Positions 1,681 to 26,139 of a stretch of DNA of 64,000 nucleotides are shown here, one piece after another (the stretch's first letter is position 1; every line of letters begins with the position of its first letter). The DNA comes from Ylistrum balloti (taxonomy: Eukaryota). The position numbers and the translations under genes were made by a program. The notes under the pieces are model-generated. The model was not told where the DNA came from and did no database searches. It saw only the letters and a list, made by a program, of their open reading frames with translations. The DNA lies in contig NW_026782116.1 of the NCBI RefSeq assembly GCF_031769215.1, positions 372,001 to 436,000 of the forward strand, written 5' to 3'.

Positions 1681-3332
1681 TGTTTTTCTGTTCCATTTGC
1701 TTTGATTTTCTCAACTTTCACTTCTACCCTAGCTAATAGCAGCCCGTCTTTTTTTCTTTTTCTTTTTCCATTTTTTTCTGTTTCAAATTGTCCCACTTTG
1801 TATGTCTGAATATTGACTGTTCTACAATAAAACCTCATTAAATAAAGCTCTTTAGAACTGTCTTGGAACATTATTCCAAGTGTTAGTTTCTTATTAGCTT
1901 TGGTAAGAAATCAAAGCCAATCCATGCACATAATTCATATTTGTGCTTTGGAAGGAAGATGATTGATGGGTTCTACAAATGGATGCTATATGTTATATTA
2001 AACACTTTTTGTGGTTAATGAATCCATTGAACATCGAAGGACTGAAAGTTACCAGCAGAGCTTACATCCAAATATTCGAATAGCATGTATAAAATGCATT
2101 CAATTTCTCCGTATAAGAGTGAAGCTGAATATCAGAACTAAATTGTATCTAAACTGCCATCGCCTTGTTTGAAAATATACTGAAATGTTTGTCTGAAAAA
2201 GAATGAAAATCATATGTTATGGGTACATATAAAGGAAATCACTCCGGAATTTAATATTTTCCTTTTTTTCTTTTTTTTAATTGTGTTATATATGTGGTGG
2301 GTAATATCCTAGAAATCGATTTTTTTATCTGATATTGTTGAGATTTTCACACCTCTAGGGGGGTATTTGCTCCAAGACTTCCATCACAGATTCCATTTTT
2401 TTTTTTGTATGCGAATTGCAAAATAAGTTATATATTTAAGTTATTTAAATTGAGATTAAATCCTTTAGTATGCTCCATTAATCGATATGAAATACTCAAC
2501 ACCAACCAACATCGGTGCTTAATACCAAAAACATTTTTAAAAATCGCCCCAACCCGCTGTGTCTACATCAGGAAAGTGTAGACACGCGGTATATTTCCTT
2601 GTTACAGTATAACTTCCAGGTACATGTGAATTTATGATAACACAACCCAATATGAATAAGTAAAGAGAAAAGACTTTTTATTTGATAACAAATATATACA
2701 TGTATGTAGCATTAAATATTTAATTGATAAAGGAAATCAACAGCAACACTTGTAGCGATAAACAGCAACACTTATAACAATAAACCTCAACACTTATAAC
2801 GATAAACAGGGGGTTTAAGAAACAGCAACAAAATTGTAACTTTATCAACAATAAATGAAAACACGCAAGTTATTAACAAATAAAAATGATTTATAGGATG
2901 TTTTATTTAAATGAATTACTTCCCTTTAAGCGTGTATAATGTCACTATCTTTAGAGTCCAAAATAATGACTATTTTTAGAAGGTTATCATTATTTATAGT
3001 ACTACCTTTTTAACTGTACAAAACATTCAGCAAATTTTTACATGGAAAATTGATATTTTTACAATGTAATTTTAACAGTATATATCTCGAAAATTTGATA
3101 AGTGTAACTGTATATGAATATACATATATATATGTATATGAATGATCATAGAAAGCAATAAAATACCATCAAGTGTTAGATATATAAAGTGTATTTCTCT
3201 ACACTTTTCTTCAGAATTGTTTGTTATTAATCGGAAAAGATATATAACCAAAATAAAGACAAACAGGTCAATAGCACCTTTTGACACAAATTTAGATTTA
3301 GCTACAGCAGAGCCAAATAATGAATTAAAATT

Positions 3333-3556
3333 CATTATAAAGCTGTTTCATCCTTCTATGACTCGTCAGTGATGCTACATCATAAAGCTGTTTCATCCTT
3401 CTATGACTCGTCAGTGATGCTACATCATAAAGTTGTTTCATCCTTCAATGACTCGTCAGTGATGCTACATCATAAAGCTGTTTCATCCTTCTATGACTCG
3501 TCAGTGATGCTACATCATAAAGTTGTTTCATCCTTCTATGACTCGTCAGTGATGCT
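3333..3556 (-). ncRNA. Head-to-tail array of five minimal type-I hammerhead-ribozyme-like units (45-bp monomer)
   Basis: Minus-strand monomer GCAUCA-CUGACGA-GUC(AUAGAAG)GAU-GAAA-CAGCU-UUA-UGAUG; cores at 3363, 3408, 3453, 3498 and 3543 (plus-strand TCGTCAG). Confidence 0.7.
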
Positions 3557-4419
3557 AAGAACCTAAATTTTCAGGCCAGGAGACGACTGAGGAAAATCGA
3601 AAAAGTGAGTCTAAACCTAAATAAGGAGATGCACTAGACCAATAGTTCAATAAATTTTGTAATTTTCATATATCTCACAATTCATGCAGTACTTGTGTGT
3701 AACGAAGAACAAAGAAAGAGGAAAAGAAACCATAATATAGTAAGGTTAATATATTTATACAGACGCAGTGTACCAACATAAATGTAAATGATTTGCAAAA
3801 CAATTGAACCAGGTGGTTAGAACAGCATATTGATAATTAAATACAATATGCAATGAACAGACATGAAATACATGTAATCTTAAATGCGATGAGTAAAAAA
3901 TGTTTTATTCTACATGGTGCCAAAAATAAATAGAATTTAATAGATACGTACAAAAACATGTAGTGAATGCAAAAGGTAAATACAGGTGACATATTCTTTA
4001 ACTTAATAGGGAAGGTTAAATATGGTGAAAACATATTAGTTTGAGTAGAACGTTATATGAATATAGGATTGAAGACTGAATCACAAAGCATATAAGTAAT
4101 GTTGACATATAGTCATAACTATCACTGTTCTATATATAGAGATATAATATTTACATATTTATCACAGGAGTTATATGTAACATCACACTCATATTTTGTA
4201 CAATGCTGTATAGATACAGAATACTGCAACAGGTAGGACGGGATGGCACGTCTAATCACACGGAGACGATAGCCTTGATTGAACATGAAAATAAGTATAT
4301 AGAAAGATTTACCGACTTGGAGCAGGCTTTTAGGGTTTCTCCATTTCCCTTTTCCTACGCTTAAACTGCTTTTGTAACGTTAACGTAATACGAAGTGAAA
4401 CAGACGAAGAACTTTCCAT

Positions 4420-4800
4420 AAGATGGAATTGTGAAGTGTAAAACTAAGTTTTTCCACATTTAAAATTTTCAACTTTTACCATTGGATTTCCTCAAAGAGT
4501 TAATAGCATGGAAACTACAAAAATAAACACATGAATTACGTTTTATAAAGTCTTACAGTCCAAAATTTGAATGATCAATTATTAATTCCATTCATAGTAT
4601 CAAAGTTTTAACAATAATTTTCAATTCGCAAAATGGTTGTTACAGATTATTGAGCTTTGATAATTTGGCATTCATAGTCAATATAAATTCCAAACGGGAA
4701 CTAACACAAATTCAGTATATGTAAATATAGCTATGAAAGCCAACCGAAACAGATCAATGAACATTCAAATAAACATAACCTGTTTTAGAAAGTGAACATC
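4420..4800 (+). pseudogene. Degenerate Penelope-like reverse transcriptase fragment
   Basis: Frameshifted remnants of F(D)FST, IP(M)GTN and YSYES in the order expected for PLE RT (TYDFSTLY…GIPMGTNCAP…LYSYE). Confidence 0.45.
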
Positions 4801-5604
4801 ACATAACTTTGTACACGTAAAAAGAATGTCATTACATGCGGTAAGTCTATGGACCTTGATTTGCAAATAAATCGACAAAAATAATATTTGTAAGAATACA
4901 TGTGTAAATCTACAGATAAAAACTCAGGTTGTTATGTTATGATGTCCAACAATATGTCTTGGAGTAAACTTTTTTTTTTTTGCAACATTTTGTTTTCATT
5001 GTATCGTCAAGCTACTTAATAATACACACTTCCTCTGGACTAATGATAACTATATAGCGAGTTTTTAAGATACACATGCCGATTCTATATACTTTTTCCC
5101 GTAAGCGATAATAATAAAAATAAATGAATCAATATTGTTAATCCAAAGCTAACCATCACCATCTCTGTCATAAAATACATCGTTACACATGGAAATAACC
5201 CATGCATGTCCTATTTTCATTACTATATGTACAATATAATATCACTTAATTTATTCAAGATATGTGTCAGTAAAAATCCAGTATTTCAAATTATGCATCA
5301 TTTTGAAGTAAAACGACGCGACAATATCATGAAATGAAACACCACGCGAACAATAAAAAAACAATGAAATCACAGTAACAATGATGATTAATGACCTCTA
5401 AAAATCTACTTTGTAAGCAATATTTGACTTTTCTGTATCCATAATGAGTAAATCATTATCAGACCTGGATAAGGTCACAACCTTTGGGACAAGACGTTTA
5501 AGTATCTATTACATATAACTTGTATTTCTTTACTTGTTTTTTTTCTGTACAACTAAGTAAGTTAGGCGATGAACTTTTAATGTCCACAATGTCAACAAGA
5601 CACA

Positions 5605-6205
5605 TATTGATATATCTAGACTAAACACAGATTAAAATGTCCAGACTAAACACAGATTGAAATGAACTTTTGAAATGTCTAAACACAATGTCTAAACAGA
5701 TTGATATACACATATTGAAATGTCCAGACTAAACACAGATTGATATATCCAGACTAAACACAGATTGAAATGTCCAGACTAAACACAGATTGAAATGTCC
5801 AGACTAAACACAGATTGAAATGTCCAGACTAAACACAGATTGAAATGTCCAGACTAAACACAGATTGAAATGTCCAGACTAAACACAGATTGATATATCC
5901 AGACTAAACACAGATTGATATATCCAGACTAAACACAGATTGATATGTCCAGACTAAACACAGATTGAAATGTCCAGACTAAACACAGATTGATATATCC
6001 AGACTACACACAGATTGATATATCCAGACTAAACACAGATTGAAATGTCCAGACTAAACAAAGATAATATATCAAGACTTAACACAGATAGATATATCTA
6101 GACTAAACACAGATAAATATATATAGACTAAACACAGATTGGTATATCCAGACTTAACACAGATTGGTATATCCAGACTAAACACACTGATATATTCAGA
6201 CAAGA
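5605..6205. repeat. Minisatellite, 25-bp unit agactaaacacagattgaaatgtcc, about 22 copies
   Basis: Direct 25-bp periodicity. Confidence 0.95.
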
Positions 6206-6250
6206 CACAGATTGATAAATCCAACACGTAACTTTGAAACTCTTCAAAGT

Positions 6251-6483
6251 CTACTTGAGCCATTTCGTAAAACTATTGTCTTTCTTCTTGCCCATCAATT
6301 CTTGTGCTCCCTCTGTTTTCATCCATTCCTCTGTGATTCTGACGGCATCCTCAGCATTGGTGACCTTCTCTACACTGTACTTCTCCTTGGCGGGCAGATA
6401 AATAAAGCCCTGTCTCTCTAATTTAGCCTGTATGACTACTCTTAGGCAAGTCTTAATGTCTGTCGCGTCCAGCTCCTCCTCGT
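6251..6483 (-). CDS. IQCM: IQCM-like terminal coding exon (DEEELDATDIKTCLRVVIQAKLERQ...KWLK*)
   Basis: gtttcag| phase-1 acceptor inside ORF 6251-6547. The segment resembles recalled IQCM ALKRANIRVVGKLVARSIRERK. Minus-strand AATAAA at 5250-5255. Confidence 0.75.
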
Positions 6484-9400
6484 CTGAAACATCATGTTCA
6501 TGGTAAGGACAATTATATACATCATGTATTACGGCTGAGGTTCTCACATTTTACATGTACTTAATTATTTTTACAATATCAGAAAACTTTATAACGTAGT
6601 AAGTTAATTATGCATTGATGTGCAATAGGATAACATTAATTTCCTTTCAAAAACTTTTTGGGAGCTCTTTAACAATAGAATCTATAAATATAAACAAGCA
6701 TAGCCGTCTGCCTGTAGACATTGTTTAAGTTGTATTTGTCGATTTATTTCCAAAACTGTTATCTTACATTGGATAAATATTGTAAGTATTAAAAAACATT
6801 TCTAAAATTAAACGATGGATAAATTCAATAATAGGTAAAAGAGAATTATAAGAGAATAGTTTTATCAAGCAAGCCAGCATATATCAATATAGAGAATTTA
6901 AGGCACTTTGTATGTATCAGTCACCAACAAAGTACTCTATGACTATACATCATTTCGGCTGAATATATCACCGACCAATCAAATATCCATCTACTGCCTG
7001 ATGTAGGTATCGACTTCCTGTTTTGCAGGGGAGCACCAAGATTCATTTTTGAAAGCTGTTGTAAATTTTTGCTCACATTAAATGATATAACAAATTGCCT
7101 TTACATTTTATATGAAGAATTTTATCAAAATCAAGCCACTAATGGGCTTAGTTCATTTTCATAAGGGAAACTATGTTGCGAGTTGATTTGGTTCTAAACT
7201 TCTATATGATACTTAAAGTTGTGATAAATGATATTTCTTTTAATCATGAACAACTACTGAAAAATAAAATACTTTGTAGAATTGTGTGCTTGAATATCTT
7301 CAGTATTGTCAGATTCCATTACCAAGTGCCATGTTTTACGAACCAGTGTTGAGAAAAGGAAAAATGATAATTTCCAACAATTCAAAGAAAAGAGCTTTAT
7401 TACTAAAATTACTCTCTTTTCCGTTTGTAATTGGTGCTAATTCACACAAGTTGACCAATCAACAACATTGAACTCATTTAATTTCTCGCGATATGGAAGA
7501 CTCTTAAACTGATGGTTAAACATCACTATAGAATAAGTTAATAGCAGTATCACAATGTAGTGTTCATAGTGTTGGGTCTGTATCATGATAAAAATACCAA
7601 GGCTGTGATATAGACACTGTGAATAATACATTCTAAACTATAACCAACGACTGTGATTAGTCTACGTAAGCGACAATATATCGGGTGCGTGATTTCGTTA
7701 TATCATATACTGGTGAGAAAGATGTGCAAATGGTGCATTGAAAAGAGACCTCGATTAAAGAATTTCAAAACTTGTCTGTTAAGCTTAAAATGACTTCTCT
7801 TCTCACTGTTACTCAAAGCATATCTGACAGCAATATATCGGATTCTTTTGCAAACTCAGAATTTGAGGTATTCGGATTATTTTTTTCATTCTCAGGAAAA
7901 TTAAGTAAATAATGTTTTGCTTATTATTTTTCAATATTGATCTATATCGTTTCTCTGAATCTAGTGTCTACTCAAATTACTAGGAGAGATAATTTAGTGT
8001 CTCACACATACCAAGTATGGATTGAGCGTTGGCCTCTTGGCCATCAACGATTGGATGTATCCAGCGAGACTTCCGGGTGATGTGAGCTGCAGGGGGTGGA
8101 TAGATGGTCCACAACATCTCCATAACATCCTTCTTATATAAGGGCTGGCACTTACCCTTCAGAGTCCCGTCCCGGCCCGCCGCTACAACACCACAAGTAG
8201 ACGGCCTGTCTTAATACAACTCCCACAACTAACCTACATGCATACCGACTTTGCTTCGTGCCAATTTTTTAATACTACAATAACGCATCTATAAATGTTG
8301 ATAAGGTATATGAACGATGTTTTTTTTCAAAACCATATGCTTATATGTAATTGTTTGAGTCGTCTGAAATGTTTATGCAATGAATAAAGCTTCTTACTTC
8401 TTACCTTTACACATACACATGCCTTCTCTACAGAACCTCCCACATTGAACCATTCTTACACTTCAAAGATTCTAACTATCGTCTCATGGCAACTATCAAA
8501 GCGATACCATTCCCGGTATTTATATGTACCAATGTGAGCTTCAATGTCTACCCCATACAGAACCGGTTAATTCGACTGTTGTGATGGTGTTAAAGGTAAG
8601 TCATTCGACTCTGGACGTCTCTCGTTATATTCTTTGCTTTGTGCCAGACTTCTTACTGTGTCGTCGATGAAGCCAGATATTCTACCTCTTGCGAAACATC
8701 TGTTTTTTTCCATGCATTTTTCATTTGTTGATATTATCAAAATATTTAATTTATCATTTATGGATAGAATTACGATTTTTCTATTACACTAAAAACTACC
8801 TGTATTGGAGACAGTTTTAAGGTGACATATCCCTATTTCGAGAAAAATACGTCAAACGTTGTAAATCAGGAGATCTTTTGTCAAGAAAGTATTTTCTATC
8901 CCCAGAAATTAGATACTTAAAGCGAATACTGATGAAAGTCTGTTATAAAAAGATAATGTAGAGAGAAATCGCTAATTAGATGAAGGGGTATTCAATATAA
9001 TTACGTAATTAAGAGGTCGGTTGTGAATGCATAGTGAGATACATGTACCAAAAGCTCGGCTATAAAGGAAAACAATATGTTAATTCTCTCATAATATCAG
9101 GGCGATTGCAGGTATTCATTATGTACTAAAAGGTTTAGTTAGTAAATGTTCGCCATTATCAGATTACTGTGTTGAGCAAACTTATTTGTTTATAGAATTG
9201 ACAACGTCCTTATTATTATAAGAGAAACATATTGTTGATAACGTTAGAAAAGCGTGATGGGAAGAGTCGGTGAGATTCGTACTGGAGGTGTAGAAGAGTT
9301 TAGATGATACATCGCACATAAGGTCTGATGATAGCGTTCTCAAGTACCCGATTTCACACCCAGGAGGGGGATACAGTGTCCAAGCTACCTCCAAAACCTC

Positions 9401-12400
9401 CGATTTGTAGAGGCCCATGTCTCTGATCCGAGGGAGGATTTGCTGACAGAGGATGCAAGCGGCTTAAAAAGTACAACCATCTTTATCTATCAGAATTTAT
9501 CATACTAAGAACAGTATCTTTCTATACTGGATTATGCAGCTAAACAACTATACCTACAAGATTTTACATCAAAATGATCTCCCATACACATTCAAGTGCC
9601 ACACGACTCGGAAAAAACCTTACTGTACTCCCATATACCACATTGTTATTCAACTTAACTGATATTGAAACTTATTTTAAATGTATTCAATTTGATTACA
9701 TTGGAGTTCTCTAAGGAATCATGTTGTATATTGAGGACGTAAAGAGTCAGTAAATTGGTACCTCACCTAAACACGTTTTCTTTGCCAACTTTTCCTTGAT
9801 CGTCTTTAAGGCGTTGTAGTCAGCAACTGTGAACACGTTTTCGTTTGACGATGCGATGGCCTCCAGCTCGTCCTTGTCATAACCATCTCCCACACCTTTT
9901 GTAGGTAAAAACATAAACTTAAATCAGAGGATGAATCTTTAAAGAAAACAGCCTATTTTTAATTTCCCCATAAGACTTCAGAAATCTGGATAACTTGACC
10001 TCTATCCTTTCATTGAGAATTTAACCCTTCATTCTCTGTTTGACGATATCTGAAATAAAGGTCTATATTATGATTCGTATATACTAATGTTGACAGCTAC
10101 TGGAACATTCATATTTAAAGTCACAGGAGGTATTGTTTGTCATTGAAACATGTCGCTTTTTTATGTAATTGTAGTCGTATTATCGGAAATGGACTATTGG
10201 AAATCCTATGAAAGTCGCTACTGGTTGTATTTTAAATGTATAGTAATTGCAACAGCCAAAACATGCAATGGCAGGTAAAAGTATTGTCTTGACATCACTT
10301 CATTGACCGTTTAATAAGTCACCTTGACCACACGTTAAATCATAGTGTATCACAATGTAAGCTAAATGATGCTACTTGCCAATGGAGAACACGGTGATGT
10401 TTTCATTGTGCGCTGCCTGGGCGGCTAGTCGGGTGTGATCGGGATTGGATGATCGCCCATCTGTAATCACTATTCCTATTCTCTGTACACCAGGTCTTGC
10501 AGACTGAATGGCATATTCATGGCATTTCTCATTAATTGTCTGATACATAAAATTTCCAACACAGCTTACTAAGGTATACATCTATTATGATAGCTTTATG
10601 GTTACTTAATATTCAATACTTTTTTCTCAACAATGTTCGTCTTCCTCTTGTAAGAAGGTAATTCTCAAACTCGGTATGATTACTTTATTTATATCATTCG
10701 TTTGCATTCGCTGTATATTCAATTGTCTTTGTACTATGATTCCAAATAACTATTAATCTTGTCGTAATTGTGTGAAACTCACCAACATCATATGGGACAT
10801 TTTTTTCAAGGCTAAATCTGTTCGTGTTACTCCGCTCCTGGGTTCCAGTTCATCTAAAATTATAGTTGATCAGTGAATGTTTATTTGTGCCCTTATATAG
10901 AATACATAACTTTCTTCGGTAAATACCGGCGTCACTAATACATGTTCACGGTGTGATAATCCATTCGGATATCTTAGATACCAATGACAGGTTGAGTATA
11001 ATACAGATAACTAAATAGACGCACTCTTCAAACTGAAGCATGCTGCTTCATATATTACAATTTCCTCGCAAAAAAAAAAAAAAAAAAAAAAATCACCCTA
11101 AATAGGATGCTGAATATCTTGGTATAAATATATTTATAATAATAAAGCTGAACGATTATGGAATTATTGGTTATATAAATCCTTAAATGGGACGACCAGT
11201 AAATAGGCTCATTGCCTCAATTTAAAGTCATATCTCTCTATATATAATCTTGTCAAAGCATTGTTAATTAAGTGCCTGGAATTTGAATAAAACCATAACA
11301 AAGTAATCGTTAGGCATACCTATAGCACAAAGTACCCCTCGCTTAGATGGATGCTTTGTGAACCCGAATGAATTGTAGATTGCGTCGTTGTAAGGTATAA
11401 CGCCAACTCGGATACGTTCTGGTCCTACGTCAAATGACGACACGACATCTTTAACAAATGTAGTCAGAAACCGGAAGCCACAAGTTCCAATGCTAGATGA
11501 AGAGTCTAAGACAAAAACTACTTCCGCAGTGGTCCCAGAGACTACAAAATAAGTTGGACGGTTAGTTCGGAGATCCGTTTTAGTTAGATATGTTACATTA
11601 TGACAAGAATGTTACAAAACGACGTGGTACATCGCAATAAGCGACGGGACGGACAATGAGTTAAAACATAAGCATTTAGGGTTTCAGCAAAAGCACACTC
11701 ATTGGATAAAAAAGATCGATATTCTATTCATTTAAATGAGGGTTAGAAACTTTGCCGGTATGTAAGACAAAATAGTTCTAATCGCCAAGGTTACAAATGA
11801 TAAGATTTAAGATTCGGGGATAGATTGTCATGTGTTGAAAACTGTTAAGCATTTTTAAAATGATATATTTCAACGAAAGAGTCTGTGATAATACCTACCT
11901 CTAAAAACACTGTCAAATGATTTTGAGAGCTCATTGCTAGTGGGTGATAGCTTGCAAGTATTGAAAAAGGTCACTAAATCTTGCTTCATTAATTTCGACC
12001 CATATGCTGTCTCGTCAAATGCTCTTTCATATTCTGTAACAAATTATGTGATAAAATATGTTATATATTAAATTCATAGTATCATGCCGTCATCAGTTTG
12101 TAAGTAAATAGAAAATGCTTTATTCAGCACGAGAAAAGTTTTAAAACTTGACTTACTAAATTTTTGGTCCATGAATTCTTCTATTTCCGTGAGGTTGATG
12201 CCACATTGACCCTTAAGTTCACCATACCTGGCCTGAATCCTAATAATCAACTCCTTGTACTCTGTAACAAACTTCTGCCAGGGTGTCCCGTGTTCAAGCA
12301 CCGCCTATCACGGAAATATCACACTCCATTATACTTATATAAAAAAGGTGTTCCCACTCTATTTTTACTTATATCTTTGTATATGAACTAATGCAATACA

Positions 12401-15400
12401 TATATGACCTTATGTGACAACAGGAGTAGATAGTGTGTTGTCACCATGAAGTACTTAACACAGAGCCACGATTGTGTGAAGTCTGACATGAAAAAGCATG
12501 AAATAACTGGAAAAATACTTGTCAGAGAGAAAAATCGTTTAAAAAACGTAGTGGTTAATGGTAACGTTAAATCAATTATATAGAATGAAGCCTTCAGAAG
12601 CAGTTTGAATAGTGTATATACAAAAAGGCAAACTACAATAACATGATATTAACAAGGGCTGGAAAGCCTGTATGTGTAAATAATGTGAAAAGTTTTGATA
12701 TAGTATAAGTACGATATATATCTGTGTTGACATTATGGTATACTTTTGACATGTTACTTCCCTATATGTCTGCTTATATATTCCATGGTTATGACCTATA
12801 ACGTCCATCGGCCACTATTATGTAATGCTTACCTTTCGTTTGAGTTTTGATAAACGTTTCCTGACAATCCACCCCCGGAATACTTTCTGTATGAGCAGAC
12901 AGGCGTCACGCCTCCTCTGCTTTTCTAGACGGTATGAATGGTAATGCCTGTTTTTAAGAAATATGTTGAGCATACATTAATTTCGTAAAACACACGCGCT
13001 GATCAATTGAAGAAAGGTACACGGTTGGTTTAACAAAGGTAAATAAAATATTTTTATTTGATCATACTTTGGCTTCTAAAAGCTTTTAGATCCTTAAGAG
13101 ATAAAACAATCCTACGAAGATAATGAAAGTCACTAAATATATGTCTGTACATAGCATGTTACATATAATTAATTGCTAGGTGTCAAGAAATGAATCAATA
13201 TTTACGCGAACAGGTCGGCATGTGGCTTATCGCCATTACGATCTCGTCTTGGGGTAGACTGGTAGTTTTTGTACGTCTTGGTGGTTGTCCGGTCAGTATC
13301 AGATCGCCATGACCTGCAGTAAAGGAAACCACACAAAGTTAATATCTGTTTACCTTTACGACTCAAACAACGAGATGTTGATAACATTGTCTATATTCAT
13401 TTCTATGAAGATGACGTTTACGGCAATAGTGGAAATAGTAAGACCTATACCAATAGTAGCAACCTTTATTCCAGTTGTAGCAATATCACCAAAGAAAATA
13501 TCGATACAAGACAATGCTTACAACAGTGGTATGAAGGCTTATACCACTGGTAGCCATGTTAACACACATGGTATGAAGGCTCATACCACTGGTAGCCATG
13601 TTAACACACATGGTATCAAGGCCTACACCACTAGTAGCCATTTTTATACCATCAGTAGCCATGTTATCACACATGGTATCAAGGCTTACACCACTGGTTG
13701 CCATGTTAACACACGTGGTATCAAGGCTTACACCACTGGTAGCCATGTTAACACACATGGTATCAAGGCTTACACCACTAGTAGCCATGTTTATACCATC
13801 AGTAGCCATGTTATCACACATGGTATCAAGGCTTACACCAATGGTAGCCATGTTAACACACATGGTATCAAGGCTTACACCACTGGTAGCCATGTAAACA
13901 CACATGGTATCAAGGCTTACACCACTGGTAGCCATGTTAACACACATGGTATCAAGGCATGTTAACACACATGGTATCAAGGCTTACACCACTGGTAGCC
14001 ATGTTTATACCATCAGTAGCCATGTTATCACACATGGTATTAAGGCTTACACCACTGGTAGCCATGTTAACACACATTGTATCAAGGCTTACACCACTGG
14101 TAGCCATGTCAACACACATGGTATCAAGGCTTACACCACTGGTAGCAATGTTTATACCATCAGTAGCCATGTTATCACACATGGTATTAAGGCTTACACC
14201 ACTGGTAGCCATGTTAACACACATGGTATTAAGGCTTACACAACTGGTAGCCATATTTATACCATCAGTAGCCATGTTAACACACATGGTATCACGGCTT
14301 ACACAACTGGTAGCCATATTTATACCATCAGTAGCCATGTTATCACACATGGTATCAAGGTTTACACCACTGGTACAATGTTTATACCATGCTAACATTT
14401 ATGCCTTTTTTTACACTTCAGTTTTCCGGTGGTGTATTTTTCTCGTTTTATTTTTACATTGTTCTTTCCGGGAGGTTACTACTACGTCAAACTGATTCGA
14501 TAGTGAATATCTTCAAATCATGGACATTTGAAAAAAATCCAAAACCTTTTAGAAAATAAATTGAACACACATATTTTATATTTTAGGTTGAATTACAAAC
14601 TTAAAATGGTGAAGGTGACATAATGTCCCTTCAAGTTGTACAATTTTATCATTCATTAATTATTAATCGTAATATCATCTCAATGGGAAAGTAAATCAGT
14701 ATATCCAGAGAAAACTAATTTCCACATTCTTATTATTCATAATATGAGAGCTTTGCTTCTCCTCTCAAACAATGAGTCATAGCGTGTGTCATGAATGACA
14801 TTGTATCATGTGTTTGTGAATATATTCATATCTGAATATCGTTTAAGCAAAGAAATGTTTGGGTTTTATATACCAATTAATATGTAAATATAACTTACGA
14901 AAGAACTGGCCCTGTAGATCAAACTTGCTTATAAAATCAAGAAAAAAGAACTGCGATATTGAATCATATAAAGTTATAGATATTCAGGAAATTAATCTAC
15001 CCTTGACAATTCCTGCTGTTAATTGATTTGAGCGAAATGCTCTTGTATCATTAGGATCGTATATCTGCCTGGTACATACCCTGAAATCAATACATTACAT
15101 TAAAAGTTAAATTTCAATCAACGTCCTGCTGTTAAGGCATTTTTAAAATATATGTTATTTAATTACAAAGAACACAATAATGTCCATCCTGTGTAATACG
15201 ATGGAGATTTATCGGTATGTAAATTGTTAACGCATGACATGCCTATGATGTAATTATATTGAAATGTAGTCTCGTGGCTATATATAACAGACAAAGATAA
15301 TACTTTCAAGCCTTATGTTACCGTGTAACTCGCAGGAAATGGAACTCTCCTGAGAGTGGACGTTTTACAAGTTGTTATAAATCGTGCCTGATCCCCTCAC

Positions 15401-18400
15401 TTTGATGTCTGTGGATCAGGTGTATATTTGTTTCAAATTAATGTGAAATAGCTTATATGTCGTGAACACATTGTTACTGTTCTTGCTTTCCCCACACTTT
15501 GACAGTTTGTTGATTTGTGATTTCAAGATTACATTTTGTACCATACAATACTAATGTAACTTCTATGATATACCCAACATTGCACTGTAACTATCATAAC
15601 AATTAAGGCTAAACATAACAGATATATACGTCCATTGGTTTATTGTTATTGAATCAACAGTGAAATAAAAACAATAAAATGTAAATAATGAAGAATGGAG
15701 TGGATTTAACATCAGGATCAAAGAATACAGATTTACGTTTTTACTTCAGATTTCAAGCTGATCATTTTTAGCAAGTTCAGAGAAAATATTGTTTATTATA
15801 TAATACATAAAGTTTCGTCCTTATATATAAATTATGATATATCTTCTTAAAATTTAGAAAAATGATTTGGTTGGCAAGTAAAATGTAAAAGTTTCAGTCA
15901 TTGGTAAAAAATAATCAAGCAAAGTGTTCATTTTATGCAAGAGATGGTACTCTCTATAATAGACCAATAAATAATATTTCCAAAAGTGATGGATCAGACC
16001 TAAACTGTATCGCTGGCCTCCATGAATATTCAGTACCTACATTGCTATCTGGAAAAGTGTTTTAATGTCAACTTAACTGATGATTTTGGAATTAAATAAA
16101 ACAAGGAAATACCAACATGTAGATAAAATCATAATCCAAACTCAATTTCCCATAAAAATAGGGCAAAAGAAAGATTTACGCGGATACTCCTGACAAAAGT
16201 ACCAGAATAATTAGACCAGGTGTTCCGGAAAAGTAAACGTTCTCTGCTTCACCCACGACACCCGCTATGTGAGCTTGGTCAATCCAAGTAAGCAATGCCA
16301 CGTTCCCAAATGAGAATAAGGTATACAACAACGAAACCAACAGGTCTAACGAGTATCCACTATGTCCAGCATTATATTACACAAAGAATTAGAATATTTC
16401 TAGATGAGATCACAATGATAAACGTAAAATTTTTAATTTTTAGCAACCTACATAATTTGAAAACCTGTGATACGGTATTTGGTAACGTATCCTTTGTTTC
16501 GTCCTTAAATATCAGTATACATTACTGTACAACACTTTATTGAGCTGTAATTGATCCTGACTTATTCTTAAGTCAAGTGAGTGATTTTTAACCATTCAAG
16601 TAAAATGAAAGAAAAAATACCATATATTAAACAAATAAATGATAAAATGACATAAGAACAAAACACTCCATTCCCAAAAAAGATGACATCATATTTGTCT
16701 GTTCGATCTCAATAACATCAATGCTACTGAAACACTTTGCGTGCAATTAATGATAAATGTCATTCAAATAAAGATAACATATTTATCCCTGACACCAATC
16801 CGTCGTATATAATGATAAAACAAATAAACTGAACAATTCATTATCAAAATGTATATAACTGAAATATCTGTCATAGATGTATTGTAGCGTTAGACAATGA
16901 CATCTTATCTTTTATCTCTAGTAATATAATATTAATAGATAACTTATACACTAAGGCTTTGTTCTCCATAATAAGCTGCTTTATCTTGTTCAAAGTGCCC
17001 TGCCAACAACAGGTAAATAAATAAATGGTGTATACAGGTTGACATTAATTCCTACATGACACGAAATACAACAATCAATAATATGGCCAAGGGACCATAC
17101 CCGATGAAAAAAAGATATACATTTACTATTCCTGACAAAAGTTGGAAACAGGTTTTTTATATTGTATTGAAATGATGTTGGATGAAATACATAGTAAAAA
17201 TTTCAATGTTTTAGACTAATACAACAGCATAAATGAGGTTTAGGTGGGTATAGACATGCCATTCCTGTTTTAAACTGATATATACGTCGTTTTGAAGTCA
17301 TGTTCGATGAGGGTACATATAATATTTAACTATTTATGAATTATTCATCAACATGAACCGAAAGAATAGGCTGATATATTTACCATTTCTGACATTAATG
17401 ACAAGTACTTCTATTATTATTATTATTTTCAAGTGATGTTTGATGACACTAACAGACCGACTTCAAATATTTCAGAAAATTAAAACTTACAAAAATAAAA
17501 CATTACAAGCAAAGGACTAAATGGTAGAGGAACCGAACTATAACATTTTATCAATCGAGACTTTAGCTGGTTTTCACTATCATAACGCAAGTCATATCAA
17601 CATAGTCTAACAATATTCTGTGCGATATGGAAGTCGAAAGCCTCATTTCGAGAATACACGAAAGAAAGAACCCAATTCAAAAATGATATACAAAAATACG
17701 GTCGGCTAGACTGGAAACTATCGGAGTGAAATACATTCGAACCTCGTTATCTCGAACTCGGCGGGACCATGGAAAAACCTCGAAATAATCGAGTATTCGA
17801 TTCAAGAAAATACGAATGTTTTAGTGTTAGGTATGGACCGACGATATGCTTTGAGTTAGACGGGTCTCCGAGTTACAAGAGCTCGAGATTACGAGGTTCG
17901 ACTTATAAACAGGAGATAATTTCAACATAGAGCATGTTTTAGAGTAAAAGAATGATATCAACAATCCTCGAACATAAGCATCAGACTATTTTATCACAAA
18001 AGGGAAGTTTTGTAAGGCATAATGGAACAGCTAAATCCGAATGAACTAAAAAAAACCATTATACTTCAACGGTACTATTGTTAACCTACATTCTAATAAA
18101 CATATGGTAGCTAAATACTTACATAGAACCCTTGGCATTCGATGAAAGCCTGTGGAAAACGAAGATACATTTGATAATATCGGGATATTTTGCATCGAAA
18201 TTTCATCTCTAGCGATTTTGTAAATGAGGAAGGACAGTGGCACACTGACGAAAATTTGTCAATACAGATCTCTATCTACATATTGCCATCAAATATTATC
18301 AAATTATAAACATATATTTATATAAAAAGTTCAATAATTACATTGCTCATTTTTATAGATGTTTTAATCTTTAACTGCAAAACAAAAACATGTACAAAAG

Positions 18401-21400
18401 CTTACTTTGGTTCACCCCGAGAGACTGACGGCGCGGGAGCTGATGACGTCATTTTGTTGTATAACCAAATGTTAAAGTCATCTTCCCAAAGCCACGTTCC
18501 TAATGGCGGTGTCCGAACTTTGGGCTTGTGTTTATTACTCCTGAAAGAAGAAGCCATCACAACTGGACTAAACTGTGACAATTTAGATTTCTATCCTGAC
18601 CGCGTGTTACAGTAAACTAGTATGAGAATGACGACTTAGCAACAGAGGTTTGATAGATAAGGGACGATGTTCCAATGAAACCTGTATATTGTGTCTTATT
18701 ATTGTATCTTTTTAATACTAAATTATTGAATTATTGTCACCACAGGAAAATGACATCACCCTGTGGGAAATACAATGCCGTAAGTAGCGTAAAGCTAATG
18801 GATCCGTCAATTGTGACCGAGATACACTCTAAATAATATATACCATTGCAATGTATCATCATAACGGTGTCTAGTTATTAGAAAAAGGGAGTTTTATTAT
18901 CAAAGTGAATTGTTTTGATTGACGATAGTTTCCAATTGACAATATAGGAAAAAACATTAATTCTTCTTGAAATCAATTACATTCGACTAGAGTAGTATGG
19001 CTTAGTTAATTATAAATGAATTTCTCCCTTTTCACATAAAACATTCTCGCGTATCATATTTAAGATCTCAAATGAGTTTTTTTTAATTCATATTTGATGA
19101 AAAGAGTGTTGGTATAACTTGGTGTGTAAAGGTCCATAGAGTCAGCCCACCTTATATCTTCTACCCTGATACCATGTGTACATCTCACACAAATACTTGC
19201 TTACCTAAGTTCGTAAACATTTCCGTATTTCGAGTTAGTGACAAACTTCCGGCTTTTTTTCTTTAGGTCCTCCTTGTCAATGTCCTCCGGTAAGTATGCG
19301 TCGTAGAAAAACTCTGAAATATATTAAGTCGTCAGAATGATTAGCTCTACCATTTTGGTCGATATTGAGATATTGATTTGAGTCAACAATACAAGTGCTT
19401 TCGAAATGAATTGATTAACAACAAAACGACAAACGTCTTTTTCATAATGTTTCATCTTCTGGTAGTTACCCCGTTCTGTTCTAAAGCACTTTCGGAAGCT
19501 GTGTTAAAAGTGTAAAAGTATGTTCAATGACAGGACCTGGACATTACTTCGTATAAAAACATTCGTTATTTGCAAATTCGTTTGCGTTTTCAATGTGATT
19601 TGAATGATCTAGTAGCTTAATTTGGGGATTTATTTTTTTTTATTTATTATGAATCGCAAAGATGCAAGGCTAATTTTCAACATCAGATATGTATTGAACG
19701 CTCTAGGAGACTAACAACCCTGACATTTAACACAAACGATAAATCCCTGACTAACAATATTTTAAAATAAATGAACCGGGGTATCTATTGCTACAAAGAT
19801 TTCCTCGACACATCGAGACCTGTTCAACTTATGTTGTGATAATTTCGCTCACTATCCATCCGTAGAAATATGACAACATCGGTAGCCATTTAGGTAAAAA
19901 AATTAATTCAAATCACAATTATTCTAAATACTTACAAGAAATATATGAGAATATCATAATTACTTTTTCAAACACTGAGATATTTACCAGTTCGTGACAC
20001 ATACAAAAAATATGAAAATCTCTATGGTAAATTCCTAAAGATAAAATACGTAATTATTAAAGTCCATTTAATACAAGTTAGGGCTTTTAGGGTGTTGAAT
20101 ACTACGACACATTTGGGAACAATAAAAGCAAACATTTATAATCATTTACACTAAATGTTGAAGCAGACCTGTATACTTAAGTGTAGATTACTGGTTTTCC
20201 ATTTGGAATTACCTTCAATATTGAAGTTTTCCATTCCATAAATAAATCATCAGGTATTGAGTGAACGGGCTTGTTCTACTAGAGCGTATTTCATATTGTT
20301 TGATGTATACTCTATCAAGCAGTACCGTGGAAAACAATATCTTATCGCACATATACCATATAAAACATTAACTCGATGTATAGGTGTGTTGCTGAGCTTG
20401 GGGTTTCTAATTGCAGTTTGCAAATCGATCCAATCAATTTACATACCGCCATTTTAATTTGATGCAAGTTGGAGCATGTACTGATACACCCAAACGGTAC
20501 GCAGGAAAGAGAATACTAAATTTTTACTTGCATGTAATCAAAAGGGGACAAGAAACATGACTATTTCTAAACACGAAAACAGTCATCACTTAGATAAATA
20601 TGATGTAAAAATAGACACATACAAAGCATTTTTGTGGTTAACCGTATTTTGCTTTTGGGGGAACTTTATGATTGAATCTATTACTTGATATAAGATGGGA
20701 TCGATATATCACTAGGTCCTGGCAGTTTTATGTCTTGTCGTAATACGATATCATTAATTTGATTGTTCGCTGGCATGATTTATATTCTAAAGATTACAAT
20801 GATGTATTTTCGACAGTTTGTCTAGTCGAGGTCGTGGTTTTGCCATTGCATACAATTCATATGATATTAATTTTTCATGAATCGAGGACAACAACGACAA
20901 TAAGAACGATAATAATAACGACGACGACGACAACAACAAAACAGGAATTAGTAAATGGAAAAATATGACTACAAAGAGTTCATGTCATCAGTGTCTTTTG
21001 ATATAAGCTTTATTTTGGCGAGAGTAAAGAAAGACAAAAGTAGCGAGCCTCTAGCAAGCCACTTTCATCTATTACATATTATTTGTTTATGTATATTATA
21101 TATGAACATTTAAAAATTGTCTATTGATTTTTCCGGGCTAACGTAGAATAAGTAAAGGGAAACGATTTAGTAGAACATATTAAGTCTGAAGGTTGATGAC
21201 AATTCCTGGCTGTTAGGACTGAGATGGGTTTAACACAGTGTTATCTACATTATCTAGTTCCATCATCGATATATTAAAACTAGTTTTTTTGAAAAAGCAA
21301 ATGTACAGATTAAGTATGTAAAAACCATGGGGACATATACAATACTGTGGATTTTGGGTTATTATGTTATTTAGTATTATCTAATGAAGTTGACAGTAAG

Positions 21401-24400
21401 AAGGTTTGATGGTAATGTTTTGAATAACTGACGTATTGACAAGCATCATGCTTTCTTTCTTTTATCTGTTGTTACAGTGTGACTTTTCATTTGTTCACTG
21501 ACCCATATCACTTCCGCGAAACATGCCGTTATCGTCTAATGATTTGATGATATCAGAGATAACAGATATACTACGTAACACCTCACTATAGCACATGTTA
21601 ACGAGGAAAGCATTTTTTCATGACCTTGACACAGACACCACAGTATAATGAAACACAGGCTGAAGTGCTGTAATACGATGTAATAATATCCATTGTCAGT
21701 CAAATAACAATAACAAGTGATAAGGATACACCATTTTCACAATATTACTAAAACAATTTTGATGAAATATATAATGGTATTTTCCGACATAACTAAATGA
21801 CAGAAATTGGTTTCAAAGCTTACGGTTTCTTGAAATAAAGCATACCTTGTCCAGATGTTCCATTAGATTTATCACAAAGTATATTATCCTGGTATCGAGA
21901 ATCTTGTTTTCGTTTCATCTGTTTCGTCAGAGACGTTATCAGGAGGTTAAACAGCGGTTCCTCACCCATCGTAGTGATGTTTTTGTCGTGTTAGTACAGA
22001 TATAGTCGATCAGCGCATTTATATTAGTTCCCTTACATCATTTCACACTGTTGATAGCTTCAAGTCTTTTCAACAAAGCTATGCATTATTTATCTTCCCT
22101 ACAGGTTATTCATTGTATGTATGTTCAAATGTTTAACAAAGGAATCACAATGGGAACACACTGGTTAAAAATCAGATAGTAAAATAGTCATAATTCCGCC
22201 TGCTGATTGTCAGCTGATGGTTGGCAGTTGTTGGTTGGATGGTTTGTGTTATACTGTAAAGTATATGATGAAATATGCCGAACAACTGTTAGTATGTCAT
22301 GTTGATGTTCTTTTACCAGGAATATTGTTATTGAGGTCATGAAAGACTATTAATGAAGCTAATTAACACTATGATATTACGTATCCAATAATTTCCACCC
22401 ATGCTTCAAACCATCCTCCGCTGTGTGGACGGACACCCAAACCATCCAAAACAGGCAGACAATAACCATTGCCTACTTTGTAATTCCCTTATATGTAACA
22501 CCCTTTGTATAACATTTTAAATGTTTCATCTATTATACATTTATTCTGAGTTTCAAGAATATTAATAAGCATAATTCTGACGAGAAATTCAATCCACGGA
22601 CTTCCAAAACATAATACTAGGGCGAACGTCAATTAACGTGATAATAATGAGAGCGTCAACTAACGTAATAGTGATGTAGGCGTCAAATAACGTGATACTT
22701 GTGTGACCTTAAACTAACCTGATACCTATGTGACCTTAAACTAACGTGATACTTATGTGACCTTAAACTAACCTGATACCTATGTGACCTTAAACTAACG
22801 TGATACTTATGTGACCTTAAACTAACCTGATACCTATGTGACCTTAAACTAACGTGATACTTATGTGACCTTAAACTAACGTGATACTTATGTGACCTTA
22901 AACTAACGTAATACTTATGTGACCTTAAACTAACGTGATACTTATGTGACCTTAAACTAACGTGATATATATGTGACATTAAACTAACGTAATACTTATG
23001 TGACCTTAAACTAACACGATACTTGTGTGACCTTAAACTAACTTGATACCTATGTGACCTTAAACTAACGTGATACTTATGTGACTCTAAACTAACGTGA
23101 TATTTATGTGATCGTTTACTTACGTGATACTGATCTGATCGTTTACTTAAGTGATACTGATGTGAGCGTCAACTAGCGTGATGCTTATGCGTGCACCAAC
23201 TTATGTGATACGAAGCCATCGTCAAATAACCTGATACCATGGTTAGCATCAACTAACGTGATACTTAGTCAAATGTCCATTAACGTGATATATAGAATGG
23301 GAACGTAAACTTGCCTGCTTTTAACGGAAAAGTCAATTATTAAGGGAGCAGCAATGCAAGCGTAGGAATGAGGAACTATGAATTCAATAAGATTTCTACG
23401 TCATTTCAATACCTTCCTTAGAAATTTCCACCAACAGTTTGTTCACAATATCACAATTTTCGAAGTATTCTATTTCTTAATGTGGTGTTATGTATGATGT
23501 GTTTGTTACCCGTTTGTATGCCTGGTGGTTCTATTGTGGGTCCATTTTGGATTGAACAAGTTTTACATGTTTGGGTCATTGGGGAAGCGCAAAGCGATAA
23601 CCCTTCCGGAACACACATAATATTATTCTCCTGGACTTTTTTCAGTGGTTTCCATGTAAGATATTCTTTTGTTTCTTCTTTGCCCTAGTTGAATTGAATT
23701 TTGAGATTGAATTAAGATCAAATTTTCCTCATTGTCCTTGGGAACTGAATTGAGTCGGGCGTTAATTCTATGGCCACTTTTAAACTCAGTACGGACAACT
23801 TGTGGTCAACCGACAGAGGCCTTGGTTTTATAACACACGTAAATTGTATAGTACATTAAAGTACTGCACACTACCATTACAGCTAATAATGTTTGGGTGG
23901 TGATTCTTTTGTCATTCTTTTTTTATCATTTTATAGTTGAACAATATTGGTCTAGTGATGAATTATGTGTTTGATACAATACCTGAGTCGTAGGCCTTGC
24001 TAAGGGACTCAGAGTGGCTTGGCTCCGTCCAAGGTTTCCGTCTGTTGACGCGTTGTTGACGTCGTATCTCGAGCTCTTGATATTTCGCTATCATGTCTTT
24101 GTCACTGCTATTATTGAAAAAGGCAGGCAGACTAAAGGGACGATTGGCCTTCCGGTCAAAATTTACTGATGAACTGACCAAAGCATTCGACGACGAGTCA
24201 GGCGCTTCCGACTGTATTAAAGAGATAAATATATGAAAAATTACTCTGACAGTAAATGTTATATCAATCGAATATGATACATTTTTCATGAATTAAAATT
24301 AATTTTTTTCTTGGATAACCGATACGATGGCAATACTCTCACGTATTGTTTTTTCACATATCTAAAAGTGTAAAAACATCTAATTCAGATAGAAAATGTG

Positions 24401-24711
24401 GGGAAATTAACACAGTTTACCTTTATCAGACGGTTAAAGCGCTTGTTATTATGACGTCTTGGCGTGTCATCATCCAGATCCTGGCCATTATAGAGGGATT
24501 CCATGGAGGCGCCATAGGTAGGTATTCTTGCGTCATATTTTCGTAATATATCAAGACTAGTGTTGGAGCCATTAATGGCATTATTAGAGGTTCGGGGTGT
24601 CCGTCTAGGTTTTCGAGGAGTGATTGTAAATGTCTTGACTTTCTGCTCCTCTACCCAACTTTTCTGATACAAGCAGTGGTTCTGTAGAATATGACGCTGA
24701 ATGCTGTCCAT
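6251..24711 (-). CDS. IQCM: IQCM-like protein with an internal VWA domain (spliced gene model, about 15 coding exons, 761 aa; 579 aa without the VWA exons)
   Basis: Exons 24421-24711, 23983-24211, 19205-19313, 18406-18540, 15001-15080, 13206-13313, 12833-12924, 12157-12304, 11899-12033, 11320-11541, 10783-10853, 10380-10503, 9767-9895, 9283-9462 and 6251-6483 chain with compatible phases and no stops (2286 nt). IQ motif IQKVFRGWIVRK, then EHG..., INLTEIEEFMDQK, TLYPPPG and LDATDIKTCLRVVIQAKLERQ, colinear with my recollection of vertebrate IQCM. Confidence 0.75.
9283..9462 (-). CDS. IQCM: IQCM-like penultimate exon (…GLYKSEVLEVAWTLYPPPG…); boundaries uncertain
   Basis: The WTLYPPPG motif matches recalled IQCM FTLYPPEG. 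Proposed acceptor tttttaag| (phase 1) and donor A|gtacga (phase 1) are both weak. Confidence 0.55.
9767..9895 (-). CDS. VWA domain exon 4 (GVGDGYDKDELEAIAS...LAKKTCL)
   Basis: Typical VWA C-terminus (GVG, EL..IAS, VF.V.DY); phase-1 acceptor; G|gtgagg phase-1 donor. Confidence 0.92.
10380..10503 (-). CDS. VWA domain exon 3 (SARPGVQRIGIVITDGRS...VFSI)
   Basis: IVITDGRS MIDAS-aspartate segment; attcag| phase-0 acceptor; non-canonical G|gcaagt phase-1 donor. Confidence 0.92.
10783..10853 (-). CDS. VWA domain exon 2 (DELEPRSGVTRTDLALKKMSHMML)
   Basis: GxTxTxxAL MIDAS-threonine segment; ttttag| phase-1 acceptor; |gtgagt phase-0 donor. Confidence 0.88.
11320..11541 (-). CDS. VWA domain exon 1 (AEVVFVLDSSSSIG...RVGVIPY)
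   Basis: DxSxS MIDAS motif; ttttgtag| phase-1 acceptor; G|gtatgc phase-1 donor; 222 nt open. Confidence 0.92.
11899..12033 (-). CDS. IQCM: IQCM-like exon (YERAFDE...SFDSVFR), EF-hand-like helices
   Basis: ttgttacag| phase-1 acceptor; G|gtaggt phase-1 donor; 135 nt open. Confidence 0.85.
12157..12304 (-). CDS. IQCM: IQCM-like exon (AVLEHG...EEFMDQKF)
   Basis: gatag| phase-0 acceptor; A|gtaagt phase-1 donor; overlaps ORF 12074-12301. Confidence 0.88.
12833..12924 (-). CDS. IQCM: IQCM-like exon carrying the IQ calmodulin-binding motif
   Basis: KQRRRDACLLIQKVFRGWIVRKRLSKLKRK (IQxxxRGxxxRK); gtctag| phase-1 acceptor; AAG|gtaagc phase-0 donor. Confidence 0.9.
13206..13313 (-). CDS. IQCM: IQCM-like exon (HGDLILTGQPP...MPTCS)
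   Basis: ctttactgcag| phase-1 acceptor; C|gtaaat phase-1 donor; the only frame compatible with both neighbours. Confidence 0.7.
13535..14385. repeat. Minisatellite, 42-bp unit built from 21-bp subunits
   Basis: catgttaacacacatggtatcaaggcttacaccactggtagc interspersed with catgtttataccatcagtagc. Confidence 0.95.
15001..15080 (-). CDS. IQCM: IQCM-like exon (VCTRQIYDPN...AGIVK)
   Basis: gatttcag| phase-2 acceptor; G|gtagat phase-1 donor (weak); bridges the phases of its neighbours exactly. Confidence 0.65.
16110..16420 (-). mobile_element. Penelope-like element 3' end (RT C-terminus plus 3' UTR), intronic copy
   Basis: The reverse complement aligns with 42950-43270 (HCDLI*KY vs RHSDLVEKF, then cttacttggattgaccaag…ccggaacacctgg). 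Confidence 0.65.
17734..17903. mobile_element. MITE with Tc1/mariner (pogo/Tigger)-type TIRs
   Basis: Inverted termini cattcgaacctcgttatctcgaactc … gagctcgagattacgaggttcgact, about 170 bp, flanked by TA. Confidence 0.8.
18406..18540 (-). CDS. IQCM: IQCM-like exon (SNKHKPKVRTPP...RGEP)
   Basis: cttctttcag| phase-2 acceptor; AA|gtaagc phase-2 donor; 135 nt open. Confidence 0.8.
19205..19313 (-). CDS. IQCM: IQCM-like exon (FFYDAYLPED...NVYEL)
   Basis: atttcag| phase-1 acceptor; AG|gtaagc phase-2 donor. Confidence 0.8.
21846..21969 (-). CDS. IQCM: Candidate alternative first coding exon (MGEEPLFNLL...NGTSGQ)
   Basis: ATG preceded by an in-frame TAA; 41 codons plus 1 nt; donor CAAG|gtatgc is phase 1, compatible with the acceptor at 19313. 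Confidence 0.45.
22683..23100. repeat. Minisatellite, 27-bp unit tgtgaccttaaactaacgtgatactta (degenerate flanks about 22620-23280)
   Basis: Direct periodicity; 9-aa period in ORF 22683-22979. Confidence 0.95.
23560..23715 (+). mobile_element. Penelope-like element 3' segment (copy)
   Basis: gaagcgcaaagcgataacccttccggaacac…gccctag…gagattgaatta, similar to the other copies. Confidence 0.55.
23983..24211 (-). CDS. IQCM: IQCM-like exon (SEAPDS...SKAYDS)
   Basis: ttaatacag| phase-0 acceptor; G|gtattg phase-1 donor; open frame, GC higher than flanks. Confidence 0.75.
24421..24711 (-). CDS. IQCM: IQCM-like first coding exon (MDSIQRH...FNRLIK)
   Basis: Acceptor cctgtag immediately before the ATG; phase-0 donor AAG|gtaaac; 97 open codons. 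Candidate donors of an upstream 5' UTR exon lie at about 24983-24992. Confidence 0.7.
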
Positions 24712-26139
24712 CTACAGGAAAACAACACAAGCAACAGGTTTTCTTTCGTATTTTATATTCGTTTACTTGTTACTTACCATACTTATACCTACATACGCTT
24801 TACTCCGTGTTTGTCGTTACCTCATTTTATGGACAATTTTCAAGCAAAAACACCACAAAACAAAACAAACTTGATCTTTAGGAATTAGAGTATTATCGGG
24901 TTCTAAATCAGTTCCTATGGACGGAAAGACACAAACACCATTAAGTATGATTGTCAACAATGACACACGCAGTGTTGGTCCCCATACCTTACTTGTTATT
25001 GCAGAGTTTCAGTCAATTATCTTTCACTGTCTGAAACTATGTGGAACTCGAGAAACAATGGAATTCCGAAAGATGAAAAATTGAGAAATGAAAACATCAC
25101 ATGCTGCGTAATTTTTCTTACCATTACTAGTTTGATATATATAACGATAACAGATTTGTTAAACTAATCCTCACCTCACTAATCAGTTTATATATTATCA
25201 ATAGATAACTCCTACTTCACTTAAAGGTCTTCACTTTTGATCTTCTACATTTTAATAATTCATAACACCTATTGGATAACGCATTAAGGCATACAGGAAC
25301 TTCTTAACTGCCTTTAATTTACCGATTGAACCAGATCTTTTTTTCTTGAATGAATCGTTGAATATTTCATGTTGCTTCCTGTTGGCCTTGATCTATTGGG
25401 TTGTTATTACGCCAAAGTTGACCGTAACCTTTGTTAGTGATAATGTAGCAAATGGAAGGTAGAACAACCGGTCTGGTCCCAATACTGTAACACTGATTAC
25501 TGGTTAGCAATGGCAAAACCATTATTACGTAACATTACTTGCTACATAAGATAAATATCTTCAGAAAGAAACTATTCATCTTATGTGTTGTCGGTTTTCC
25601 TTCCCATGTCGCCTCGATCTCCTATTACGTAGATTTTATAAGACACACAAGTGAATAGCACCTTTCAAAACAATTTAAAATCAAAAGTGTTTATTACCTT
25701 ATTAGGACATCTAGCACTATTCACTAATGCTTATGATCTAAATTTTGAAACGTTAAGCGATGTTATACAGACAACATAAGAAATATAAAGGAAATGCTGC
25801 AATGCTTTTTGGATTAAAACCAGAAATATAATTGCAATATTGCGTCATTATCCAGTGTCGCCAATTCAGATTATATTTCATATGGTAGTGTGGCGTAGTG
25901 AGAAGATATAGTTTTAACAGGCGGACTTAGTGTGATTTCTTCTTTGTATTCGGGATTCCTCTTACAAATCAAAAGTAATACATGTAATCATTCATTTCAA
26001 AAAGACACACGTTCTTAAAGTATCAAAGTGTGACATCCATAGGTTTATTTTTAGTTTTTAAGCAGAAAATATAATCAATTCTTTTATGTTCAAAATTGAA
26101 CAGTAATACAATGTAAACTAAAATATATCAACCAAACAT

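Follow-up and report, generated by a model that had tools for sequence, protein, structure and literature searches.

Four exons on the minus strand of a 64,000-nucleotide (nt) stretch of the Ylistrum balloti genome (assembly GCF_031769215.1, contig NW_026782116.1, positions 372,001 to 436,000; this whole stretch is called the window below, and positions are counted from its first letter) encode a complete VWA domain, and they are best explained, with a probability that we put at about 0.8, as a constitutive domain encoded by a single conserved gene that is the counterpart of IQCM in Lophotrochozoa. The predicted protein would begin with a conserved N-terminal part, continue with a single IQ calmodulin-binding helix and a small helical domain, and then carry a VWA of 181 amino acids (aa) with its intact metal ion-dependent adhesion site (MIDAS), followed by one or both of two duplicated exons that share a W-T-x-Y-P-P motif and by a conserved C-terminal domain. 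The VWA belongs to the extracellular-matrix type and was most likely inserted into a phase-1 intron of its host as a phase 1-1 module; this probably happened before molluscs and nemerteans diverged, and the domain would have been kept since then under strong purifying selection.

A first-pass annotation of this DNA had proposed that the four exons, here V1 to V4, form a full VWA with all MIDAS residues, and their coordinates, lengths and phases were confirmed (Table 1). Together they measure 546 nt, which gives 181 stop-free codons in the frame used, and the block matches the Pfam VWA family (PF00092) over profile positions 2-173 of 174 (E 7.2e-38, 131 bits, cut-off 23.8); orthologs likewise match this profile full-length and above the cut-off. 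The MIDAS is complete, being made up of D-S-S-S-S, the first T of GVTRT and the D of ITDG. Each of the four exons is preceded by an AG acceptor, and the donors of V1, V2 and V4 are GT. The donor of V3 (10378-10379, minus strand) is GC, in the context G/GCAAGT, where Mizuhopecten has GT at the same position (gtgagt); it is unchanged in a second individual (run X1), and the use of an alternative GT four bases further on would break the frame. The block is entered in phase 1 and left in phase 1, as the first-pass annotation had claimed, and its omission would therefore preserve the reading frame, leaving an open reading frame (ORF) of 557 aa. The codon split across the entry junction (11899/11541) reads Val in the window (FR-V-SGTT), Ala in an Argopecten-type mRNA and Gly (F-R-G) in nearly all other orthologs.

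The same architecture is found well beyond Ylistrum. A HMMER search with the exon that follows the VWA returned proteins of Patella and Lottia with a VWA at the identical place, and a search with the Patella protein recovered the combination of IQ motif and VWA, which it had been proposed to look for in other molluscs, from bivalves, gastropods and cephalopods (about 20 species) as well as from the nemertean Tubulanus. Nearly all of these orthologs have a VWA of exactly 181 aa. The Mizuhopecten RefSeq exons equal those of the window in length (135 nt before the VWA; 222, 71, 124 and 129 nt within it; 180 or 171 nt and then 230 nt after it) and in phase. The octopus protein, mapped exactly on its own locus, has VWA exons of 222, 71, 127 and 147 nt, which follow a 138-nt exon of phase 1-1 and are entered in phase 1, and the first three VWA exons of Tubulanus measure 225, 74 and 124 nt, with the same phases as in the window (1>1, 1>0, 0>1). 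Symmetric phase-1 boundaries were thus established for the window, Mizuhopecten and octopus, and the entry boundary and internal phases for Tubulanus. Since the positions and phases of the VWA introns are common to octopus and Tubulanus, the module and its three internal introns predate the mollusc-nemertean split. The lineage-specific fusion suggested earlier consequently stands only as a difference between Lophotrochozoa and chordates; anything narrower is at odds with an architecture, intron positions included, that three molluscan classes have in common with a nemertean.

Transcript data join the parts in one message. Several mRNA contigs from relatives (a scallop and oysters) read in frame from ..VFR/K-G into ..AEVVFVLD.. 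and back out of the VWA. They include an Argopecten-type Logan contig of 2370 nt and 732 aa (L005), an oyster-type contig of 687 aa (L001) and further oyster contigs (P0039, P0040, P0082-87), all with the VWA inside one uninterrupted ORF. As the gene has at least 14 introns in every genome examined, these intronless contigs are spliced mRNAs. The contigs of the second individual of the window species are colinear with introns, which means that the run consists of DNA, not RNA. The oyster-type contig L001 also carries a second uninterrupted ORF of more than 860 aa on its minus strand (2549-5149), which suggests either convergent transcripts with overlapping 3′ ends or an assembly chimera.

The VWA is also the best-conserved part of the protein, with 92-93% amino-acid identity among three scallops. 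Its ratio of non-synonymous to synonymous substitution rates (dN/dS), an analysis that the first-pass annotation had called for, is 0.030-0.036 in the same comparisons, at synonymous distances (dS) of about 1.1-1.3 that are near saturation. The second individual differs from the window by 33 substitutions over 6 kb; exons make up 23% of this stretch, yet only one of the 33 is exonic, and that one (9810, in V4) is synonymous (GCC>GCA). Of 22 orthologs, 17 retain an intact MIDAS.

The flanks of the VWA carry an IQ motif recognised by Pfam, and the earlier statement that the domain sits inside one gene was borne out. Exon 6 matches the IQ family (PF00612) with an E-value of 2.8e-5 and 23.9 bits (cut-off 20.3), and the motif is also found in P0022 and P0024. 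The identification of the host as IQCM is probable for the region before the VWA, which resembles human IQCM in Foldseek and in language-model features; it was not echoed by Pfam, which returned the IQ motif as the sole match of the flanking exons and no IQCM family, nor by the C-terminal model. When the part of the Mizuhopecten protein before the VWA was compared by language-model features, three chordate IQCM clusters scored 0.91-0.92 (176-186 shared features), the next family being at 0.75. A Foldseek search of the Swiss-Prot AFDB with an AlphaFold model of the pre-VWA part (17 sequences, pLDDT 68) placed human IQCM at the top (E 7.6e-6, probability 1.00; next match E 0.04), aligning query residues 2-292 with residues 28-409 of 501; the TM-scores are only 0.36 and 0.22, low values that are expected of flexible, partly disordered models. 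A PDB profile search with the N-terminal alignment returned only IQ motifs of myosins and axonemal proteins, and Atlas feature searches with single exons were uninformative. Taken together, the structural models and features suggest that the N-terminal two thirds of the protein are likely homologous to IQCM.

The domain itself is of the matrix kind, in agreement with the first-pass annotation. Among the 60 PDB matches listed of 84 with E<1e-5, the nearest solved relatives are N-domains of collagen VI alpha-3 and mussel PTMP1 (E 9.5e-35), followed by the integrin alpha-1 I-domain (E 5.5e-17) and vWF A3, with no intracellular VWA family in that list, and, orthologs apart, the best matches in the protein database are collagen VI, collagen XXVIII and VWA proteins of molluscs. 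Judged by these sequence matches, the window VWA is not derived from the intracellular VWA families. The Cys residues around the domain vary: Tubulanus has them on both sides (FRG-C..., ...AC-L), cephalopods on the N-side only and scallops at the C-terminal side only, and the window, with the Cys of KKTCL and none on the N-terminal side, shows the state that had been described for it. This pattern would fit descent from a disulfide-clasped secreted module. The host had been called signal-peptide-less, and a hydropathy scan, which is not a dedicated predictor, found no signal peptide and no transmembrane segment (maximum 19-residue hydropathy 1.2). The N-terminus is hydrophilic and hydrophobic segments are missing, so the protein is most likely intracellular.

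These relationships bear on an alternative in which the IQCM family had its VWA from the outset, in the bilaterian ancestor or before, and chordates later lost it. At the deepest split sampled, the length of 181 aa and the introns were already fixed, as great age would have it, and the taxa compared are molluscs, a nemertean and chordates. However, the nearest relatives of the domain are secreted matrix VWAs, the Cys pair of Tubulanus and the N-side Cys of cephalopods fit a captured matrix module (although they do not date the capture), and human IQCM offers no place for such a domain: of its 501 aa, residues 28-409 are already taken up by the alignment with the pre-VWA part, which leaves no room for a VWA. 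The first-pass annotation was right that vertebrate IQCM has none, and the chordate IQCM clusters list the IQ family only. We consider an ancestral VWA improbable.

The capture of a matrix-type module by an IQCM-type host, preferred here, can also be set against a recent, lineage-specific fusion in which the VWA block would be spliced in or left out whole, as an optional cassette. The phase 1-1 boundaries and the frame left open by a skip suit such a cassette, and rare isoforms in the window species would be compatible with transcript evidence drawn from relatives. Isoforms were surveyed in Mizuhopecten (X1-X4), Magallana (X1-X4), Haliotis, Gigantopelta and Octopus, together with Logan contigs; the VWA was present in every one of the approximately 30 RefSeq isoforms and mRNA contigs from these five genera, and no VWA-less form was seen, contrary to the switchable splice isoform envisaged in the first-pass annotation. 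Variation lies instead in two homologous tandem phase 1-1 exons directly downstream of the VWA, rep1 and rep2. Mizuhopecten isoform X1 has rep1 and X2 has rep2, the RefSeq isoforms of Haliotis and Gigantopelta alternate in the same way, and oyster mRNA contigs contain rep1 only, rep2 only, both or neither, so that the alternation is conserved across bivalves and gastropods. A conserved, optional microexon of 27 nt, present in Mizuhopecten models and not in the Argopecten-type mRNA, has intact splice sites in the window (cacag/.../gtaagt). In the forms surveyed the VWA is constitutive, and alternative splicing affects rep1/rep2 and the microexon. The architecture and introns common to octopus and the nemertean largely refute the word "recent", and no other part of the protein is as constrained as the VWA; we regard the cassette as very unlikely. 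That the VWA exons form a separate or nested gene, with the joint models being annotation or assembly artefacts, hardly deserves credence: public models of the locus are indeed faulty, being fused in Lottia and Mytilus coruscus and split in Haliotis rubra, but independent intronless mRNA contigs have a single ORF that runs from the IQ part through the VWA to the C-terminal part, the phases match at either end of the VWA, and the upstream intron, confirmed at 357 nt (11898-11542), is too short for a promoter and a first exon, as the first-pass annotation had indicated.

The reading of these exons as a constitutive domain of the lophotrochozoan IQCM counterpart has several points against it. The link to IQCM is drawn from language-model features and from predicted structures of modest confidence (see the pLDDT and TM-scores above); word-indexed sequence searches, whether with an N-terminal profile or restricted by region, returned molluscan proteins only and no vertebrate IQCM, and the C-terminal model (pLDDT 63) has no significant match in the Swiss-Prot AFDB, the ESM Atlas or the PDB, IQCM included. 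The transcript evidence comes from relatives, and the window's own junctions are predicted. Lophotrochozoa may have gained the domain, or chordates may have lost it, the deepest split sampled being that between molluscs and nemerteans. The MIDAS is degenerate in Octopus and Argonauta and partly so in Dreissena, Sinanodonta and Gigantopelta, which implies that metal-dependent binding is not essential everywhere. Finally, the putative function and the intracellular location of the protein are inferred from its sequence.

Within these limits, an IQCM-type protein with a captured matrix VWA is ancient and constitutive. The VWA would most likely act inside the cell as an Mg2+/Mn2+-dependent protein-binding module on a calmodulin-binding scaffold, and the alternative exons after it may tune the choice of partner. 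Human IQCM is testis-specific in RNA-seq surveys and its function is unknown (PMC7436996); by analogy, a role in sperm or cilia could be guessed at. It is conceivable, if doubtful in this full form, that a VWA of matrix origin, its MIDAS still functional, has served for more than half a billion years as the intracellular binding module of an IQCM scaffold under calmodulin control, possibly in sperm or cilia, and that the duplicated exons, of which usually one or the other is used, switch its partner or its regulation.

The full gene model was built by spliced alignment guided by scallop orthologs, and its junctions in the window are predictions on the minus strand. It runs from an ATG at 24711 to a stop codon at 6251-6253 and comprises 14-16 exons, with an ORF of 739-799 aa depending on the optional exons; all splice sites are canonical except the one GC donor. 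These figures replace the 761-aa model of the first-pass annotation, in which the WTLYPPPG exon and the last exon had other boundaries. For the former, the donor 9311 was rejected, as its phase 0 is incompatible with both downstream acceptors, and the exon ends at 9283; for the latter, the acceptor 6534 was rejected, as orthologs use 6483. The window protein is 87% identical in amino acids to that of Mizuhopecten yessoensis, the closest match, and 85% identical to the Argopecten-type mRNA; the window thus represents a third pectinid scallop.

Table 1. Predicted exons of the IQCM-type gene with its VWA block, in the order of the transcript
Feature	Position	Strand	Length and phase	Remarks
Exon 1	24421..24711	minus	291 nt	start codon; conserved N-terminal motif ..ILQNHCLYQKSW..; Mizuhopecten exon 1 equally long
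Exon 2	23983..24211	minus	229 nt	poorly conserved, probably disordered; ends RRKPW
Exon 3	19205..19313	minus	109 nt	YV.N.KYG.IYE motif
Exon 4	18406..18540	minus	135 nt	TWLWE motif
Microexon, probably alternative	18123..18149	minus	27 nt	LSSNAKGS-
Exon 5	13206..13313	minus	108 nt	
Exon 6	12833..12947	minus	115 nt	IQ calmodulin-binding motif; octopus exon also 115 nt
Exon 7	12157..12304	minus	148 nt	start of helical domain (W..F..EYKEL..RIQ.RYG); octopus exon also 148 nt
Exon 8	11899..12033	minus	135 nt, phase 1-1	last before the VWA; ends ..SFDSVFR; octopus equivalent 138 nt, phase 1-1
VWA exon 1 (V1)	11541-11320	minus	222 nt, phase 1>1	MIDAS D-x-S-x-S
VWA exon 2 (V2)	10853-10783	minus	71 nt, phase 1>0	MIDAS Thr (GVTRT)
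VWA exon 3 (V3)	10503-10380	minus	124 nt, phase 0>1	MIDAS Asp (ITDG); GC donor
VWA exon 4 (V4)	9895-9767	minus	129 nt, phase 1>1	ends ..LAKKTCL
Alternative exon rep1	9283..9462	minus	180 nt, phase 1-1	C.LCQ..LPRI...WTLYPPPG
Alternative exon rep2	8012..8182	minus	171 nt, phase 1-1	C.PL...WTIYPPP...RWIHPIVDG
Last exon	6251..6483	minus	230 nt + stop	conserved C-terminal domain TD..TCLR.VIQAKLER.GFI; acceptor 6483 as in scallop orthologs

Some further features of the locus were observed. The helical domain of exons 7-8 (11899-12304; residues ~180-293 of the model m3ceca57a1f32) shows a weak likeness to EF-hand lobes (calmodulin, calpain PEF, troponin C) when the N-terminal model is compared with the PDB and the ESM Atlas, with a local root-mean-square deviation of 1.5-3.6 Å over 44-63 residues and E-values of 0.5-3; Pfam gives no EF-hand match in these exons. 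Minisatellite-like tandem arrays occupy intronic sequence at 13490-14400, 22690-23170 and 26090-26520, and another lies at 5900-6250, directly after the stop codon, in the probable 3′ UTR (untranslated region). Such arrays give rise to long spurious ORFs on both strands.

The architecture is already in public protein sets, under names that are uninformative or wrong. Orthologs are called 'uncharacterized', 'collagen alpha-1(XII/XIV)-like', 'collagen alpha-4(VI)', 'cartilage matrix protein-like' or 'COL12A', the collagen and matrix names having been given because a VWA is present. Some public models are fused with neighbours or split (P0007 of Lottia, P0060 of Mytilus coruscus, P0069 of Octopus vulgaris, P0045 and P0047 of Haliotis rubra), and we found no paper on this architecture and none that names a gene or protein identifier of its orthologs in oyster, scallop, octopus, clam, mussel or limpet. 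Such matrix-type names mislead, and these proteins should be left out when molluscan matrix genes are counted. For vertebrate IQCM, which is testis-specific and has no known function, a lophotrochozoan counterpart with a strongly constrained binding domain may be useful, in that its partners could be fished through the MIDAS; if the VWA is truly an intracellular MIDAS module, the lophotrochozoan protein would offer a handle on the function of the vertebrate one. With intron positions unchanged from nemertean to scallop, the locus would also be a clear and datable case in which an intracellular gene captured a matrix-type VWA via a phase-1 intron.

Compared with known systems, the scallop-type protein combines traits of three groups. 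Human IQCM (A0A1B0GVH7) likewise has one IQ motif and no signal peptide, and in the AlphaFold models its aligned residues cover the whole pre-VWA part of the scallop-type protein; chordate IQCM, however, is without the VWA that the scallop-type protein possesses, and for the C-terminal domain and the duplicated W-T-x-Y-P-P exons no counterpart in IQCM was found by the C-terminal model search. The matrix-type VWAs (collagen VI N-domains, matrilins, PTMP1, integrin alpha I-domains and vWF A) provide the best sequence matches to the window VWA and share with it a complete MIDAS, bounding phase-1 introns and a Cys near the C-terminal end. Unlike them, the window VWA has three introns inside the domain and resides in a host devoid of a signal peptide or other matrix domains, and scallops, like most molluscs, lack the N-terminal partner Cys. 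Intracellular VWA proteins, such as copines, Rpn10, Ku70/80, Sec23/24, midasin and VWA8, use the same fold to bind proteins, whether in the cytoplasm or in the nucleus, and often have a MIDAS, and copines couple the fold to Ca2+ sensing; the pairing of an IQ motif with a VWA in the scallop-type protein is another architecture.

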